A stretch of 64,000 nt of DNA from Paragordius varius (taxonomy: Eukaryota; Animalia; Nematomorpha). This document shows positions 2,189 to 48,463 of the stretch, in pieces. Both the position numbers and the translations under genes were made by a program. Location: assembly GCA_964247055.1 (NCBI GenBank), contig OZ176052.1:10788001-10852000 (forward strand), in the 5' to 3' direction. Each line of letters starts with the position of its first letter. Position 1 is the stretch's first letter. The notes beneath the pieces were generated by a model, which worked only from the letters and a program-made list of their open reading frames with translations, was not told where the DNA came from and did no database searches.

Positions 2189-2609
2189 TTAAGGTAAGAT
2201 TTAAATATATATGCAATGTATAAAACAGTTAAAATCAAATCAAAAATGACAATCGATAATTATAAATGAGCTGGGGTAGTTATCCTTCACACTAAGGATA
2301 AAACAAATACATAATTGTTACTGATCAAGTATACATAATTATTAAGTGTTATAACAATTTTGTTGCAAAAACAACAGATGATATTTTACGCAAATAATTG
2401 GATCAAATGAAAATGTTTTGCATTATAAATTTTTATACTTGTGTCTTCGTCCATGTTGTGAAGTTTGATGTGCATTAAATGCAAAAAATTTGGTCAAATA
2501 TTCGATCGGATGGGTTTTTCAAAACTCAAATTTAAATCACAGGTGTGGTTATAAATGACCGTTACTATTCATTCATTCATCGTAGTTGGGCGTAATTATT
2601 CTATTTACC

Positions 2610-2837
2610 ATGAAGGAGTCTCAATTGCAACATTATCAGCGTTTGGCTGAAAAGTACCTCAAAACAATCATTAAATTTGCTGAAGCCAACCCACAACGCT
2701 TTTTATTATACGTGGTAATAGCGCTTTTGCCTATTTTTTTGATCAGTGCTTACTTGTCAAGCAAGGCAAAACAGGAAAGAAAAAAAGAAACAAGACGCAG
2801 TGGAAGAAATATTGGTAAAGACAAAAAATCAAAATAA
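2610..2837 (+). CDS. SMIM15: SMIM15/UPF0542-like small single-pass membrane protein
   Basis: Intronless ORF MKESQL...KFAEANPQRFLLYVVIALLPIFLISAYLS plus a Lys/Arg-rich tail. Resembles the SMIM15 pattern ([28 protein letters not shown] + basic tail) from recall; no search run. Confidence 0.7.
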   Translation: MKESQLQHYQRLAEKYLKTIIKFAEANPQRFLLYVVIALLPIFLISAYLSSKAKQERKKETRRSGRNIGKDKKSK

Positions 2838-2888
2838 TTATGAATTTATTAATTGATACACAGCCATATATTTTATAATAATTATTTT

Positions 2889-3833
2889 CTACAATGTGCA
2901 CGTATCCTTGAAATCATGTATCCACTTTAGACCATCGTTTGTATTACCTTAATAATTAACATCAATGCATTCGTTTATACTTTTTGGTATGTATTCCAAC
3001 CCAATAAATTTGCCATAATTTAAATTTTTTAACAAATCAAAAATATATTTATATGATATTTCTCCTGCCGTATCCGGTTCGTTTCGTAATGGTACTTGGG
3101 ATATTTGCATATGGCCTACAGGTTTAAATTTCATATTCAACCAATTAAAGGGAAAAGCGTATTAATGGATTCCGTTAGATTACCTTGTATCCTTTGCAGG
3201 TGATACATATCTAATTGTAATTTGATACGTGGATCATTTACTCGTTTTATAATTCTTTCCGCTAAAGAAAAGAATTAAAAAATAATACCTTTAACAAAAG
3301 AATTCATAAAGTAATTTGGAACGGCTTGTGAGCATATAGGTTCAATAACTCCTATCATATCGAATTCATTTAAAAGTTTGGTTGAATATTGCAAATTTTC
3401 AACCATCGTTTGTTCCATTTCATCCAAAAGTTTGGCATCGGGGTTTTGTGGAATAAAACCAGCCAATATATGCACACTGAAGTTTAAATTTTGGTGGTTA
3501 ACCTTTTACAATCTAATTCTTTTGCATATTCCAAGGCTTTGGCAAAGAGTGTTTTAAATCTTTCTTCCATACCTGGAATGGCTGCCAGTCCCATTTCATT
3601 AGCGTTTCCTTATTATTATGAAAAATATTAAAAAAACCTCTGGGCGTATTTATCAAGACGTGTTTTAATCCTATATCATTAATATGTTTTAATTGTTCAA
3701 AAGGGATTCCATAAGGGTCAGGGTTTTCAACATACCTAAATCCGGCGGATTTGGCTGCTTTGTAGCGGTCAATTATGGTTCCATGTTCTTTGAACAGAAA
3801 ACCCATGTTTGCACACAATTTTAGCTTACTCAT
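2889..3833 (-). CDS. HYI: Hydroxypyruvate isomerase, 6 exons
   Basis: MSKLKLCANMGFLF...GVIEPI...KLQLDMYHLQRIQGNL...IGHMQISQVPLRNEPDTAGEI...IGLEY. Five GT-AG introns (3609-3637, 3477-3502, 3262-3288, 3116-3141, 2948-2980; 29/26/27/26/33 nt) restore one continuous frame ending at TAG 2889. Confidence 0.93.
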
Positions 3834-33800: not shown

Positions 33801-34020
33801 AAGATAAATATTTGGAAAGAACATTGAAAGCTAAGAACATGTTTCAAAACTACTAAATTTAAATTCATCTAATCTTTTGACGGGTTCCAAGCCTCTTACG
33901 GATGCCAGTATGTTTGCAAAATGTATATTTTAATTTGACCTCAAAGTTTACTTTTAAAAACACTAACTGTTATGGAAAAACTAATTCGAGTTCGAGACAC
34001 TTTGATATTAGATATATGGA

Positions 34021-37000
34021 TAAGGTGACCAGACGTCCCGCTTTTTCACATTTTGTCCCGCTTCCCGCTACGTTTTTAAAATGTCCCGCTTTTTCACGAT
34101 TATATAAAAAAAAATTTTTTAATACAAATAAATTTTTTTTATCCGTTTAAATTTTTTATCATTAAAATCTATATAAATTTTAAATTAAAATTTTTTATTT
34201 TTAAGTTAAAAGTATTTTTTTTTTGAATTTATATCATATGATTACAAACTTTCCTTCCTACTACTACTGTCATTAGTATCAAAAAGCCAAGTTAATACCA
34301 CAAATCTCTAGATTAATGGACAAATTGATACCACAAATTGGTACATTACACGTTTATTCCAGAAAATTAAGGTAATATAATATTTATTATACCAATATTT
34401 TAGTTTTATTACTTGCCAACATTATTAAAAAGCCAAATTAATACCACAAATCGGTAGCTTAAAAAACAAATTTATACCACAAATCGGTACCTTACACGTT
34501 TATTTCAGAAAATTAAGGTAATATAATATTTATTATACTAATAGTAGTTTATAAATATGAGCACAAAAAGAGGTTGTAAATTCAACAATGAATTAATGAA
34601 AGATTTTCCTTAAAAAAACGAAAAATGAATCATCTGTTAAATATCTTATATGCGAGGGGGAATTTACCCTAGCACATGGCGGCAAGCATGATATTACAAA
34701 GCATATGGAAACACAGAAACATAAAAAATGTTTAGATATGGCGGCATCATCTTACAAAATGAGCGTTTTTTTCGAAAAACCGCTTTTGGAGAGGAAGAAA
34801 AGAATTCGGCACTAGCTGAGGGCGTGTTATCTTTTCACGCTGTTAATCACAATCATTACTTTAGATCTATGGACTGTACCTCACAGGTTATTCGCACGTT
34901 ATTCCATAAAAAATTTACATGTGCCCGTACAAAGGCTGAAGCTATTGTGTGCAATGTCCTTTCGCCACATGCATTTTCTGAAATACAGAAAGATTTGATA
35001 AAAATTAATTTCTTATCCTTATACTCTGCTGCATCAAATCACATGGAAACAAAATTATTTCCCACTTTAATTAGATATTTTTATCCAGAAACCGGAGAAT
35101 TAAAATTTTAGTTATATTTCTCTTGGTGAAAATTCCGACATAATATTTACTTCAATAATGGATATTCTAGAAAAAAATAATTTAAAAGACAAAATTATCG
35201 CATATTGCGCTGACAACACCAATACGAACTTTGGTGGAAAAGCAAGGAGGGGAACAAAAATATTTTTCATAAATTAACAGATAATCTTAATCAAAACATT
35301 ATTGGCGTTGGGTGTGCAGCGCATATAATACACAACGCTATTCAAACAGCTGCTGATTTGTTACCCCTAGATGTGGAAAATGTAGTTGTTAAAATATATT
35401 CCTATTTTTATATATACACGGTACGTGTTGAAATGCTTAAAGAATTCTGTCAGAAGTTCAATATCAAAAAATGCTTGGATGTTGTAAAACTCGTTGGTTA
35501 GCTTTTATGCCAGCTATCGAAAGAATTTTAAAAATGTATGATCCTTTAAAATCTTTTTTTTATCACAGGACAAATGTCCTACAACTTAAAAAAGTTTTTT
35601 GAAAGTGATTCTTCAAAAATAAGGTTAGAATTCTCACATAATCAAGCTTCTCTCTTTCAAAATGTTATCAAATATATAGAAGGTGACAAAATTTCGGCAA
35701 TCGAAGTAGCCAATGAAGTTAGTAACCGAAAATTCCAATGTCAAGAACGGTTAGAAAATAATTTTATACCATTAACCATCCGCAATATAATAAATAATTT
35801 AGAAAAACAAGGCTTAATAAATCGCCAAGATATCCTGTACCATATAAAAATGTTTTATACAAATTGTAAAGATTATTTGGAAGACTGGACGACGCAATTC
35901 GATGAAATTGATTATTTTCATTGGATAACATTAAAATCAGAATTTAATTGGTGCGATTTTCAAAAATCAATTGATTATATCTGCTCCCAAAAATTCTCAA
36001 AAAGTAATCTTTCAGAAAATGATCTTTTTGAAGTATCATTAGTTAAAAGATATATTAATAATGAAAAGCTTAAATTATGGACAAAAGAAAAATATACAGT
36101 AGAATAGAAATGGTTGGAAATATTTCATCATTTTGAAGCCAACTATATTACATACAATAATATTTTAAAAATTGTGGAATTCGCACTATCTTTACTTGGA
36201 ACCAACGTTGCTACTGAGCGCGTTTTTTCCACAGTAAATCAGGTGTGGACATAAAATGTTAAAACTTTAAAGGCCGTTTTATCTGTAATTTGACAAATTC
36301 TTGTGAAGACTTCTACAATATTTTAAAAATGATGACAATCTGCTTAAACGCACTCACTCATATACCAAAGAATAAAATATTTTCTTATTTTATAAAGTTT
36401 TTATGTTAAAAAATAAACAAAATTACTTAAAATATTGTATAAGTCTTCATAATTTGTCAAATTATATTTGAACACACATAATGGCTTTTATTCAACATTT
36501 AAATTTGATTCCGTGTCCTTACTTAATTTACTGTGGAAAAACGCGATAGCAGTGGTTCAGGTAAAGATAATGCAAATTCTACAATTAAAATATTATTGTA
36601 TGGAACATAATTTGTTTAAAAATGATTATTTTAACCATTTCTATCCTACGTATTTTTTTCTGTTGTCCATAATATAAGTTTTCATTCAATATATTTATTT
36701 AATAATGAGACTTCATAAAAAAGTGTCATTGTGCACCGTCTTGTCTTCCAAATAATCGTTTCTATTTGTATAAAACATTTTTATATTCTGGCTATTCATT
36801 GAGCCTTGTTTTTCTGGATGCTTTATAATATCGCGTTTAGGTAATGGTATAAAATTATTTTCTAACCTTTTTTGACTTGGAATTTTGACCTTTGTCCTGT
36901 GATAAAAAATAGGATTCTAGGAGATCACATTTTTATAAATATTTCAATCGCTGACAAAAGAGCTAACCAACAGTTCTACAATATCTAAGCATTTTAACAT

Positions 37001-37398
37001 CTATATTTTCCACATCCAGGGGTAACAAATCAGTAGCTGTTTGAATAGCGTTGTGTATCTGCCAATAATGTTTTGATTAAGATTATTCGCTAAATTGTTA
37101 AAAATATTTTTTGTGCCGCTTCTTGCATCACCCAGCGCACTTTGTGATGATTTCGTCTTTATTATTTTTTTCTAGAATTTTACAATCACTTCACCCTTTG
37201 TTCGTGCACATGTAAATTTATTGAATAAAATACAAACAACCTGTGAGGTTGAGGTACAAATTTTTTTATATTTATAATGTATTTGTGTTAACAATAAATA
37301 ATTACAATAAATTTTTTGTATAAACTTTTTGGTTGTACCCCCCAATGACCCCCCCTTCTCGAGTCCCGCTTTTTCCTTCAAAAAATCTGGTAACCTTA
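34021..37398 (+). mobile_element. hAT (Blackjack-like) DNA transposon, copy 1
   Basis: TIRs TAAGGTGACCAGA / TCTGGTAACCTTA; perfect 8-bp TSD TATATGGA (34013-34020 and 37399-37406); subterminal GTCCCGC and AATACCACAAATC repeats. Confidence 0.93.
34557..36373 (+). pseudogene. Frameshifted hAT transposase
   Basis: MSTKRGCK start, BED-type finger remnant (..CEGEFTL.HGGKHDITKHMETQKH), CARTKAEAIV, CADNTNTNFGG, GCAAHIIHN (CxxH), TRW and a TERVFS dimerisation region, split over several frames with stops. Confidence 0.9.
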
Positions 37399-39096
37399 TA
37401 TATGGATGATGCTATGCAAACAGAAATAACAAAAACTTTTTCTTACCGTAATTATAATGTTTTGATTTTTAAACCCATTTAATGAAGTAATTTACTGGTA
37501 CAATATTAATGGATTCAAGTGAGGTAAGGTTATATTAAATGGTCATTCTTATTTTTATGTCTGAAAAGAGGAAATGTTTTTGTGAATTAGATTTCCCCAC
37601 TAAGGTGGGAATAAGCGAATTCAATTTTCCGGAAACCTTGCATTTCAAATAAAGCAAAGATTTATACATTTTAAGTTTTAACAGAGCACAACATCAACTA
37701 CTATGTGTTAGTCCTGCTCAAATGAGTGAAAAAACAATTAATTATAACTAATTATTATAAAACCTGAAGGCCCAGATAAAGGTTTTAATTTCGATATACA
37801 AATACTTATTGGAAATGGAGCAATGAATAAAATCCTATCAATACTCAATTGATAAAAACTGCTAGATATAATCAGAAGTGAAATGTCTAAAAATTATAAC
37901 GGAACTAAACATTTAATGACTCAAGAACTGCTCTAGCCATTAGCAATGTACCTATTCACTCATGGGGAAAAAAGCGTTTTAAACAATACAACAAATGATT
38001 TTAAGATATATAAAGTCCTGTTTATTAGTATTTAAAATAAATATATCTTGTTTATTTTCCGAAATTCTTTGCACGCGGTTGTATTTTTATATCATGGCTG
38101 CCTTATATTGTGATAAAATAAACCCCATGCTTATTTTTTCTATTCCATCCATATTAAACGAAATATTTGTTGATATGAAATCGCCTCAAGTTTTAGCAAA
38201 TATAAAATTTCGATTTTATATTTATTTCGATGATTTTTTTGGACATTTGACCTAACTAAAAAAATTTAGTTTAAATGATATGGAAAATATTTTTAATAAA
38301 CAGCATTAAACTAATAAAATATTTTTGGTTCATTAAAAGCCTACATTTACACACTATTGGAAAAAATTATTTGCATAAGACGTGTACCAAATTAAATTTT
38401 AATTACACGTATGAAATGAAAACGTATAAGGTAAATAAACAGGTAGTGTGAACTTTCTTAAATTGCAATCTGTTATGTACGCACTGTATAAATACAAAAT
38501 ATTTATTTAATATTAAAAGTTAGGTACGCGTGTAAAGGTTTTGATATGAATTCATTACCCACCTCCAATAAACTGTATGTTATATTTTATGTATTTACAT
38601 ATAGAAAATTCAATTTATATATTAAAAAATATAAAATGCCATTTTAGATCGTAAAACTAACACAATTATTTTGTTTTCAAATAAAATATTTTTTAAAAAC
38701 TTCACAAATAAATACATGTCTGGCACAAGCCGATATACAATATAATTGTGTATGGAGCTCTAAGATATAAAATCGGAACAATGCACCAAATTAATTTGCT
38801 AACTTAAAAAAATAATTTATATTTTTACTCAAATATATGTGGTTGGTCATGTTTGCAATAAATTATCACAGGAAAATAAAAAGGACCCCCTTATGTACAT
38901 GAAATTAAAAAACTGTTATAAATTGCATGGTAGTTAAAACCATTTTTATTGGGAACATATTTTATATACAAAATATTTTGTAAAATTAAAAGAGCAAATT
39001 GTGTGTGTGTAGTGGATAAAAAAAGGAGACAATATGTAAATGAAATTCACAATCGTTTTCTGTTGCAACAGAAAACAAATTGACGCCATTCATTAT

Positions 39097-45387: not shown

Positions 45388-48300
45388 TAAGGTGACCATA
45401 TTTTTTGAAGGAAAAAGCGGGACAAATCTGAGAAGGGGGGTCATTGGGGGGTGCAACCAAAAATTTTTATACAAAAAATTTATTGTAATATTTATTTATT
45501 TTTAACACAAATACATTATAAATATAAATTGTACCTTACAGGTTGTTTGTACCTTATTCAATAAATTTACATGTGCACGAACAAAGGGTGAAGTGATTGT
45601 AATATTCTAGAAAAAAATAATAAGGACGAAATCATCACAAAGTGCGCTGAGTGATGCAAGAAGCGGTAAAAAAAATATTTTTAACAATTAAGCGAATAAT
45701 CTTAATCAAAACATTATTGGCAGATACATAACGATCTTCAAACAGCTGCTGATTTGTTACCCCTGAGTGTGGAAAATGTAGTTGTTGAAATCTTTAGATA
45801 TTTTAATCATTTTACACAAACTATATTCCATACAATAATATTTTGAAGATTATAGAATTTGCATTATCTTCTGGAACGCTGCTATTGAACGCGTTTTTCC
45901 ACAGTAAAACTAGTGGGGACACGGAAAAATCAAATTTTATTGTTGAAATTTTAGCTATTTTATGTGTTCAAATATAATTTGACAAATTTTTATGAAGACC
46001 TATACAATATCTTAAGTTTTTTTATTTTTTAACACAAAAACTTTATAAATATAAGAAAATATTTTATACTTTGGCATATTTTATATTTGAGTGAATGCGT
46101 TTTAGCCGATTGTCATCATTTTTTAAAATATTGTATAAGTCTTCACAAGAATTTGTCAATTTATATTTGACAGATAAGATGGCCTTTAAAGTTACAACAT
46201 TTAAATTTGATTTTTCCGATATCCACACCTGATTTACTGTGGAAAAAACGCGCTCAGTGAGGCGTTGGTTCCAGGTAAAGATAGTGCGAATTCCACAATT
46301 TTTAAAATATTATTGTATGTAATATAGTTGGCTTCAAACTGATGAAATATTCCAACCATTTCTTTTCTACTGTATATTTTTCTTTTGTCCATAATTTAGT
46401 TTTTCATTATTAATATATCTTTAAACTAATATTCAGAAAAAATATCATTTTCTGAAAGATTTTTTTGAGAATTTTTGGGAACAGATATAATCAAATGATT
46501 TTTGAACATCGCACCAATTAAATTCTGATTTTAATGTTATCCAATGAAAATGATTAATTTCATTAAATTGTGTCGCCCAGTCTTCCAAATAATCTTTACA
46601 GTTTGTAAAAAACATTTTTATATGGTACAGGATATCTTGGCGATTTATTAAGCCTTGTTTTTCTAAATTATTTATTATATTGCGGATGGTTAATGGTATA
46701 AAATTATTTTCTAACCGTTCTTGACAATGGAATTTTATAACTTCATTGGCTACTTCGATTGCCGAAATTTTGTCACCTTCTATAAATTTAATAACATTTT
46801 GAAAGAGAGAAGCTTGATTATGTAAGGATTCTAACCATATTTTGAAGAATCACTTTCAAAAAACTTTTTGTTGTAGGACATTTGTCCTGTCATAAAAAAA
46901 TGATTTTAAAGGATCATACATTTTTAAAATTCTTTTGATAGCTGGCATAAAAGTTAACCAACGAGTTTTACAATATCCAAGCATTTTTTGATATGAACTT
47001 CTGCATTTTCACAGAATTCTTTAAGCGTTTCAACACGTACCGTGTATATATAAAAATAGGAATATATTTTAACAACTACATTTTCCACATCTGCGGGTAA
47101 CAAATCAGCAGCTGTTTGAATAGCGTTGTGTATTATATGCGCTGTACACCCAATGCCAATAATGTTTTGATTAAGATCATCTGTTAATTTATGAAAAATA
47201 TTTTTTGTTCTCCTCCTTGCTTTTCCACCAAAGTTTGTATTAGTGTTGTCAGCGCAATATGTGATAATTTTGTCTTTTAAATTATTTTTTTCTAGAATAT
47301 GCATTATTGAAGTAAATATTATTTCGAAATTTTCACCGGGTAGTGAAATTAATAAAATTTTAATTTTTACTCCGGTTTCTGAATCAAAATATCTTATTAA
47401 AGTGGGAAATAATTTTGTTTCATGGTGATTTGATGCATCAGAGTATAGGGATAAAAAATAATTTTCAGCAAATCTTTTTATATTTCAGAAAATGCATATG
47501 GCGAAAGGACATTGCACACAATGGCTTCAGCCTTTGTACGGGCACATGTAAATTTTTTATGGAATAACGTGCGAATAACTTGTGAGGTAAAATCCATAGA
47601 TCTAAAGGAATGATTGTGTTAACCGGCGTGAAAAGATAAAACGCCTTCGGCTAATGCCAAATTCTTTTCTTCCTCTCCAAAAGCGGTTTTTCGATAAAAA
47701 TCGCTCATTTTGTAAGATGATGCCGCCATATCCAAACATTTTTTTATGTTTCTGTGTTTCCATATGCTTTGTAATATCATGCTTGCCGCCATGTTCTAGG
47801 GTGAATTCCCCCTCGCATAAAAAACATTTAACAAATGATTCATTCTTCGTTTTGATAAAAGGAAATTCTTTCATTAATTTATCGTTGTATTTACAACCTC
47901 TTTTGTGCTCATATTTATAAACTCTATTAGTATAATAAATATTATATTACCTTAATTTTCTGGAATAAACGTGTAAGGTACCGATTTGTGGTATCAATTT
48001 GTCTTTTAAGCTACCGATTTGTGGTATTAATTTGGCTTTTTGATATGTTAGCAAATAAAACTAAAATATTAGCGTAAATATTATATTATCTTAATTTTCC
48101 GAAATAAACGTGTAAGCTACCGATTTGTGGTATTAAATTATCTTTTAATCTAGAGATTTGTGGTATTAACTTGGCTTTTTGATAATGATGACAGTAGTAG
48201 TATGATGCAAAATTATATGATATAAATTCGAAAAAATAAATATTTTTTAATTTAAAAATAAAAAATTTTAATTTAAAATTGAATAGATTTTAAAGATATT

Positions 48301-48463
48301 TAATGATAAAAAATTTAAACTGATAAAAAAAATTTATTTGTATTTAAAAATTTTTTTTAGATAATCGTGAAAAAGCGGGACATTTTAAAAACGTAGCGGG
48401 ACGCGGGACAAAGTGTAAAAAAGCGGGACTGTCCCGCCAAAAGCGGGACGTCTGGTCACCTTA
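45388..48463 (-). mobile_element. hAT (Blackjack-like) DNA transposon, copy 2, inverted relative to copy 1
   Basis: TIRs TAAGGTGACCATA / TCTGGTCACCTTA; perfect 8-bp TSD TATTTATA (45380-45387 and 48464-48471). Confidence 0.93.
46064..47912 (-). pseudogene. Frameshifted hAT transposase (copy 2)
   Basis: MSTKRGCKYNDKLMKEFPF...KCFLC...KHMETQKH (BED), CADNTNTNFGGKARR, GCTAHIIHNAIQTAAD. Its lesions partly differ from those of copy 1. Confidence 0.9.

Follow-up and report, generated by a model that had tools for sequence, protein, structure and literature searches.

De novo silencing of transposons is best understood where an inverted duplicate of a transposase gene triggers it, and such triggers are known only as fixed loci in plants. 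Can a mobile element of an animal carry such a duplicate of its own gene, and does the duplicate silence the family or travel as passive cargo? The question is raised by a 3.4-kb hAT element at positions 34021-37398 of a 64,000-nt stretch of DNA (the window) from the nematomorph Paragordius varius (GenBank assembly GCA_964247055.1, contig OZ176052.1, positions 10,788,001 to 10,852,000 of the forward strand). An earlier reading of the letters of the window, made without database searches (the sequence-only reading), had described a hAT transposon with a built-in inverted mirror of its transposase gene, had likened it to the maize locus Mu killer and had suggested that it may be self-limiting or family-silencing. 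We consider it fairly probable (roughly 0.7) that the element is a copy of a dead hAT family with an old inverted duplicate of the transposase open reading frame (ORF), which is of repair origin and is tolerated as passive cargo. The same inverted-duplicate architecture thus occurs here in a mobile animal unit of at least 161 copies, a natural test of a hairpin limiting a transposon family. Even if the duplicate is passive cargo, the family offers one dated instance of fold-back repair within a DNA transposon, and a case of a long palindrome that is transposable and has been retained for a long time.

An inverted copy of the transposase gene within a complete hAT element

The element starts with TAAGGTGACCAG and ends with CTGGTAACCTTA. 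An inverted-repeat search returned a collinear series of reverse-complementary blocks that pairs 34878-36326 with 36427-37249 at 72-94% complementarity. From the centre outwards these are 36301-36326 with 36427-36452 (92% complementary; this innermost pair is 100 nt apart), 36127-36168 with 36585-36626 (86%), 35842-35896 with 36732-36786 (87%), 35730-35833 with 36783-36886 (80%), 35493-35560 with 36904-36971 (72%), 35328-35395 with 36991-37058 (94%), 35256-35306 with 37061-37111 (88%) and 34908-34948 with 37182-37222 (85%). When the family consensus was compared by BLAST with its reverse strand, the same five collinear blocks emerged (E values of 1e-14 to 1e-125), as they did for the window copy, and the collinear, deletion-compressed mirror of the transposase claimed in the sequence-only reading is confirmed by both searches. 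The translated remnants quoted there for the arm and the gene are also present in the ORF translations, FNKFTCARTKGEVIV in the minus-strand ORF 37172-37381 and FHKKFTCARTKAEAIV in the gene ORF 34728-35111.

The whole structure is enclosed by two distinct ends and a perfect 8-bp target-site duplication (TSD), as had been noted: TATATGGA at 34013-34020 is identical to TATATGGA at 37399-37406. The 5' terminal inverted repeat (TIR) is the 13-nt TAAGGTGACCAGA (34021-34033, plus strand), with which all 28 copies read end, and the 3' TIR (37386-37398, plus strand) is TCTGGTAACCTTA in the window copy and TCTGGTCACCTTA in the consensus. Between them, all on the plus strand except the arm, follow a 5' subterminal and untranslated region (34034-34556) with GTCCCGC motifs near the end, a single-exon transposase pseudogene (34557-36375) that is collinear with an intact 624-aa relative and contains stops and frameshifts in the window copy, the loop of the palindrome (36329-36426), the mirror arm on the minus strand (36427-37257), a right copy of a direct repeat of about 50 nt from the 3' untranslated region (UTR) (37258-37305) and a 3' subterminal region with one GTCCCGC motif (37306-37385). 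The arm runs from about codon 607 of the ORF back to about codon 109 and has four internal deletions; its blocks are 72-94% complementary to the gene. Within the loop lie the last 15 or so codons together with the stop codon (36373-36375), followed by the left member of the 3' UTR repeat (36376-36426); AATAAA hexamers also occur in the loop. The transposase was earlier taken to end before the loop; by collinearity with the intact relative its stop codon lies within it. The 5' untranslated region also contains a tandem duplication of about 120 nt (34277-34397 and 34421-34543) upstream of the transposase start, which is present in the family consensus too, the window units being 90-93% identical to the consensus units.

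The assignment to hAT stands on the 8-bp TSD, the short 13-nt TIRs and a C-terminal dimerisation domain. A C-terminal ORF piece of a sister copy (L008, 2523-3191, minus strand) matched Pfam Dimer_Tnp_hAT (PF05699) with 31.7 bits against a cut-off of 21.4, and a piece of another copy (L012) scored 28.9 bits. The domain is also present in the intact public relatives (620-635 aa), which are named "HAT C-terminal dimerisation domain-containing". As to an RNase-H-like DDE catalytic core, single N-terminal and central ORF pieces gave nothing significant in Pfam, and only the C-terminal piece identified hAT. Language-model look-alikes of the transposase pieces belonged to FAM200/ZBED5 RNase-like and DUF4371 clusters (0.92), and homologues bear PF27046, PF27041 or PF14291.

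Collinearity between the consensus ORF and the intact relative extends over residues 1-624, and the frameshift sites are polymorphic among copies. Three frameshifts in a first consensus were partly artefacts of polymorphic homopolymer and indel sites, and they say nothing on the intactness of the founder ORF; majority consensus sequences served for comparison only. No intact ORF was found among the 104-150 family matches scored, the longest stop-free stretch being 400 aa, and the family is dead today in this assembly. One family match (C2:4992589-4993260) covers residues 2-225 only and lies in a stop-free frame of 435 aa; either a fusion or a rearrangement may have produced it. A look-up of the exact protein encoded by the 177-aa ORF of the window, with transcript assemblies possibly within its reach, found no public contig, and two long ORFs of the window had no informative match in Pfam.

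Mobility of the palindrome and the building of the arm

The genome was searched over 110.6 Mb in 44 contigs. It contains at least 40 full-length matches over the whole 3.4 kb at 88-94% identity. Among the copies with both ends in the fetched loci, the 13-nt TIR is common to all (28 of 28) and perfect, mutually different 8-bp TSDs flank 24 of the 28; copies deviate from their consensus by 1.3-4.7%. The junction of arm and 3' UTR, searched as a 34-nt pattern with up to three mismatches, had 161 matches in the genome (none for the reversed control), and the corresponding arm-less junction, a 35-nt pattern, had 59 (control 0); these junctions supply the genome-wide tally with and without the arm that had been suggested as a check. 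A second, independently inserted arm-bearing copy lies within the window itself (45388-48463, minus strand) and lacks consensus 2687-3034, a 348-bp deletion within the arm. Because there are 161 junction copies, at least 40 full-length copies and distinct TSDs, the structure is not an assembly artefact. The palindrome transposed whole, many times, to at least 161 sites, in agreement with the earlier claim that it moved as a unit, and since the arm has no termini of its own and lies between the normal ends of the family, it was the transposase that moved the whole palindrome. This transposase came in trans, or once from the element itself.

The arm-less sister form shows where the arm begins and ends. 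One such copy (L031, on C8), with its own TSD CATATGCT, consists of consensus 1-2471 and 3313-3460 only and lacks exactly the arm (2472-3312); the same junction is contiguous at 40 or more other loci. In alignment, a UTR segment of about 50 nt that starts just past the stop codon is single-copy in arm-less elements and flanks the arm on both sides as a direct repeat. The right repeat is near-identical to the UTR of arm-less elements; the left repeat has about eight substitutions and a 7-nt gap, and is as diverged as the arm. Some arm-less junctions (C3:3806119, C6:4716040 and C7:2989418) carry the ORF-end variant of the arm-bearing type, ACCAAAGAATAAAAT, and may be secondary arm losses.

These borders bear on the proposal that a reverse-oriented deletion derivative jumped into another copy's 3' UTR and has since been deprived of its ends. 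In its favour, nesting occurs among hAT elements, and the arm corresponds to the gene with internal deletions. Against this, no TIR-like motif was found at either border of the arm, the flanking direct duplication is about 50 nt and not the 8 bp of a hAT insertion, the arm begins and ends inside the ORF, and the borders are the same in all copies. A nested insertion is therefore highly improbable, and the arm behaves as a built-in part, with no sign of the separate derivative with its own TSD that would have spoken for a later insertion.

We favour a repair origin for the arm. During repair of an excision gap or break, the new strand would have copied the ORF and about 50 nt of 3' UTR, would then, in a fold-back, have taken the opposite strand as template from a point about 100 nt upstream and copied the gene backwards, and the copied arm would finally have been rejoined to the 3' UTR, leaving the UTR direct repeat on both sides. 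The strand switch and the rejoining to the 3' UTR together account for the arm, the loop and the direct repeat. Template switching between family members is shown by mosaic copies. Three arm-bearing mosaics (L018, L051 and L052, at C2:5554554-5560945, C3:6196121-6199888 and C6:5551806-5555570) are 8-10% diverged from the other copies over their first ~1 kb, with mostly synonymous differences in the ORF part, and 1-2% over the remainder. These mosaics imply that recombination took place with a diverged lineage and that selection acted on the transposase of that lineage.

Age of the arm and the question of silencing

The metagenome contig that encodes the intact 624-aa relative (L053; ENA ERZ504362 NODE_2957, 2199 nt) served as outgroup. 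Its transposase is 69% identical to that of the family in amino acids and 80% in nucleotides over the ORF, and the contig ends 26 nt past the stop codon. The maximum-likelihood tree had the topology (outgroup,(arm,(arm-less genes, arm-bearing genes))), in which the gene clade is supported at 98/92 and, within it, the arm-bearing genes at 97/99 and the arm-less genes at 95/98. The arm has a stem of 0.135 and the genes have one of 0.025; the stem of either gene clade measures 0.013, and terminal branches measure about 0.02; in site counts, the arm branch carries 66 changes, the gene stem 16 and the two gene lineages 17-25 and 20-22. The tree shows that the arm split off first, ahead of the parting of the gene lineage into arm-bearing and arm-less clades. 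Before the burst that yielded the present copies began, its divergence from the gene had reached about 15% and deletions had shortened it.

The same tree can be read with the arm-less state as ancestral for both gene clades. The arm module (left UTR repeat plus arm) would then have been gained late, by recombination or template switch, with an old and dead palindromic copy as donor. In favour of this reading are the position of the arm outside both gene clades, the reciprocal monophyly of arm-bearing and arm-less genes, under which a single gain is no less parsimonious than a single loss, the existence of mosaic copies, and the onset of high divergence precisely at the left boundary of the left repeat. 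We consider this alternative rather less probable: an earlier fold-back is still required to build the donor, and a deletion between the two direct repeats of about 50 nt is a simpler origin for arm-less elements, one that predicts an arm-less UTR near-identical to the right repeat. Loss fits slightly better than gain, given that divergence in the left repeat equals that in the arm and that the arm-less UTR and the right repeat are near-identical.

The changes along the arm branch are those of DNA under no constraint: 13 are of synonymous and 53 of non-synonymous type, the neutral expectation being about 20% synonymous. The outgroup branch has 58 synonymous and 39 non-synonymous changes, the pattern of a functional gene. 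On the gene stem, past the split from the arm, there are 8 of each, a hint of selection, and the two later gene lineages look neutral. The arm-bearing gene and the arm agree against the arm-less gene at 22 sites; with the outgroup used to polarise changes, none of these points to a joint change, and hence neither compensation nor gene conversion has linked the gene with the arm. After insertion, the arm has accumulated 2.1% substitutions and the ORF 2.4%, with deleted fractions of 1.5% and 1.7%. From the long arm stem, the neutral changes and the ORF-like decay it follows that the arm module is several times older than the burst and has behaved as neutral DNA, which is what the preferred reading, an old duplicate carried as passive cargo, describes. 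An origin of the arm in a long-diverged functional subfamily is not favoured, as the arm branch has no synonymous excess. Apparent purifying selection within the arm-bearing clade (27 synonymous versus 18 non-synonymous changes on the stem of L018, L051 and L052) was traced to the recombinant 5' kilobase of these mosaics and is no evidence of autonomy.

Two side observations concern rates. The loop (36329-36426), compared over 28 copies, has 4.8% post-insertion substitutions versus 2.1-3.0% elsewhere, about a twofold excess that could be alignment noise in low-complexity sequence or an effect of the hairpin tip. In the arm (consensus 2497-3311, read in gene sense), the arm branch has 16 A>G versus 4 T>C changes, a strand asymmetry that is uncorrected for base composition.

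Could the arm, old as it is, work as a built-in silencer? Transcripts would read through past the weakened polyadenylation signals of the loop, the arm would fold on the coding region, and small interfering RNAs (siRNAs) made by Dicer would damp the family in cis and in trans, as a mobile device of the Mu killer kind. Much of what such a device needs is present. A read-through transcript would fold into a long, mismatch-interrupted hairpin cleavable by Dicer: for 34870-37262 the predicted RNA fold has a minimum free energy of -888.6 kcal/mol versus about -457 with the arm dinucleotide-shuffled, and in it the gene pairs with 709 of the 836 bases of the arm; of the 90 helices so formed, five have at least 20 bp, and the longest has 41 bp. 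This very stable, long and interrupted hairpin is what the RNA-folding check proposed earlier called for. The genome also retains RNA-interference genes, about which the sequence-only reading had asked (one Dicer-type, one Drosha-type and two Piwi-domain genes of the Argonaute family, the latter at C2:3353388-3355921 and C1:12319268-12327742). A search of the genome for a eukaryotic RNA-dependent RNA polymerase (RdRP), run without a positive control, gave no match, and Nematomorpha have been reported to be without RdRP (PMC13650160); hairpins would therefore be a main source of double-stranded RNA (dsRNA). There are two AATAAA hexamers in the loop, where they had been pointed out as a caveat, and three in the right UTR repeat, of which the left repeat retains one. 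Loop polyadenylation may accordingly end transcripts ahead of the arm. The complete death of the family (0 intact ORFs among the 104-150 scored copies) would also suit a silencer, and plant hAT and Mutator elements offer precedents (PMC3440606; bioRxiv 10.1101/2020.01.07.897926; 10.1101/2024.06.24.600476).

The evolutionary signals point the other way and make a silencer unlikely. The arm drifted neutrally without compensatory change, when the burst began it already differed from the gene by some 15% and had been compacted by deletions, and after insertion it decays like the ORF. Only 20 of 795 arm 21-mers (2.5%) are perfectly antisense to the gene, and 67 are so with at most one mismatch. The arm-bearing form is also the more numerous (161 versus 59), and "self-limiting" is a poor description of it: since this form became the commonest, any silencing effect was too weak to stop its spread. 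A related proposal is that the fold-back arose in the autonomous lineage itself, that an active hAT long bore the antisense arm in its 3' UTR while purifying selection maintained its transposase (to which the 8:8 ratio on the gene stem would point), and that the arm acted as a Dicer-dependent throttle in an animal without RdRP, letting the family persist and outnumber its arm-less sisters; we find this quite improbable. A role like that of Mu killer is thus possible but unproven, and passive cargo is favoured.

Several points nevertheless weigh against passive cargo as we describe it. The loss of two hexamers from the left repeat could favour read-through into the arm, and the 8:8 ratio on the gene stem may hint at a working transposase that long coexisted with the arm, which would then have been useful or at least harmless. 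A silencing function remains compatible with the sequence data. The repair route is inferred, with junction microhomology of only 1-2 nt, and the copies read are a limited sample (39 arm-bearing and 12 arm-less).

Relatives and known systems

Intact relatives at 45-57% identity occur in beetles, moths, wasps, aphids, ticks, fish and a frog. The pollen beetle Brassicogethes aeneus (GCA_921294245.1, OV121139.1; L054:2424-4824) has an element with the identical 13-nt 5' TIR TAAGGTGACCAGA, which is 79% identical over the first 88 nt and has an ORF 56% identical in amino acids and 65% in nucleotides. The shared TIR and these relatives make the family a candidate for horizontal transfer between insect hosts and the parasite.

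No published description of a mobile hAT element with an internal mirror of its own ORF was found in a limited set of literature, which is no proof of absence. Among animal hAT elements, Tol2 has internal inverted repeats of about 300 bp in all copies, according to a preprint (bioRxiv 10.64898/2026.01.12.699174, citing Izsvak 1999), where they are called unique among hAT elements. The repeats of Tol2 differ in that they derive from an Angel miniature inverted-repeat transposable element inserted in an intron and do not mirror coding sequence. The Pack-TIR or gap-repair chimeras of animal DNA transposons (PMC8277862) resemble the present family in their mechanism, the capture of sequence by template switching during repair; they are rarely amplified, and hAT elements are their commonest carriers. 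Pack-TIR chimeras capture host DNA, whereas the window family captured its own ORF, reversed.

Inverted duplications of hAT elements that affect their family are found in plants, in the Ac/Ds composite insertions formed by alternative transposition (bioRxiv 10.1101/2020.01.07.897926) and in the Tam3 Stabiliser loci (bioRxiv 10.1101/2024.06.24.600476), which give rise to dsRNA and small RNAs and repress the family. They differ from the present element in being fixed, locus-specific rearrangements that involve two elements or flanking DNA, in plants with RNA-directed DNA methylation, and not an amplifying unit with one pair of TIRs. The closest comparison offered by the sequence-only reading was Mu killer of maize (PMC3440606, PMC1563492), and the defining feature of that locus, an inverted duplication of part of the family's transposase gene from which a long hairpin RNA is possible, is also found here. 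Mu killer, a single, non-mobile plant locus, belongs to the Mutator superfamily; it is transcribed from an adjacent gene, and siRNAs and heritable silencing have been demonstrated for it. In the window element, known from sequence alone, the inverted copy is old and decayed, lies within a complete animal hAT and was transposed to 161 or more sites.

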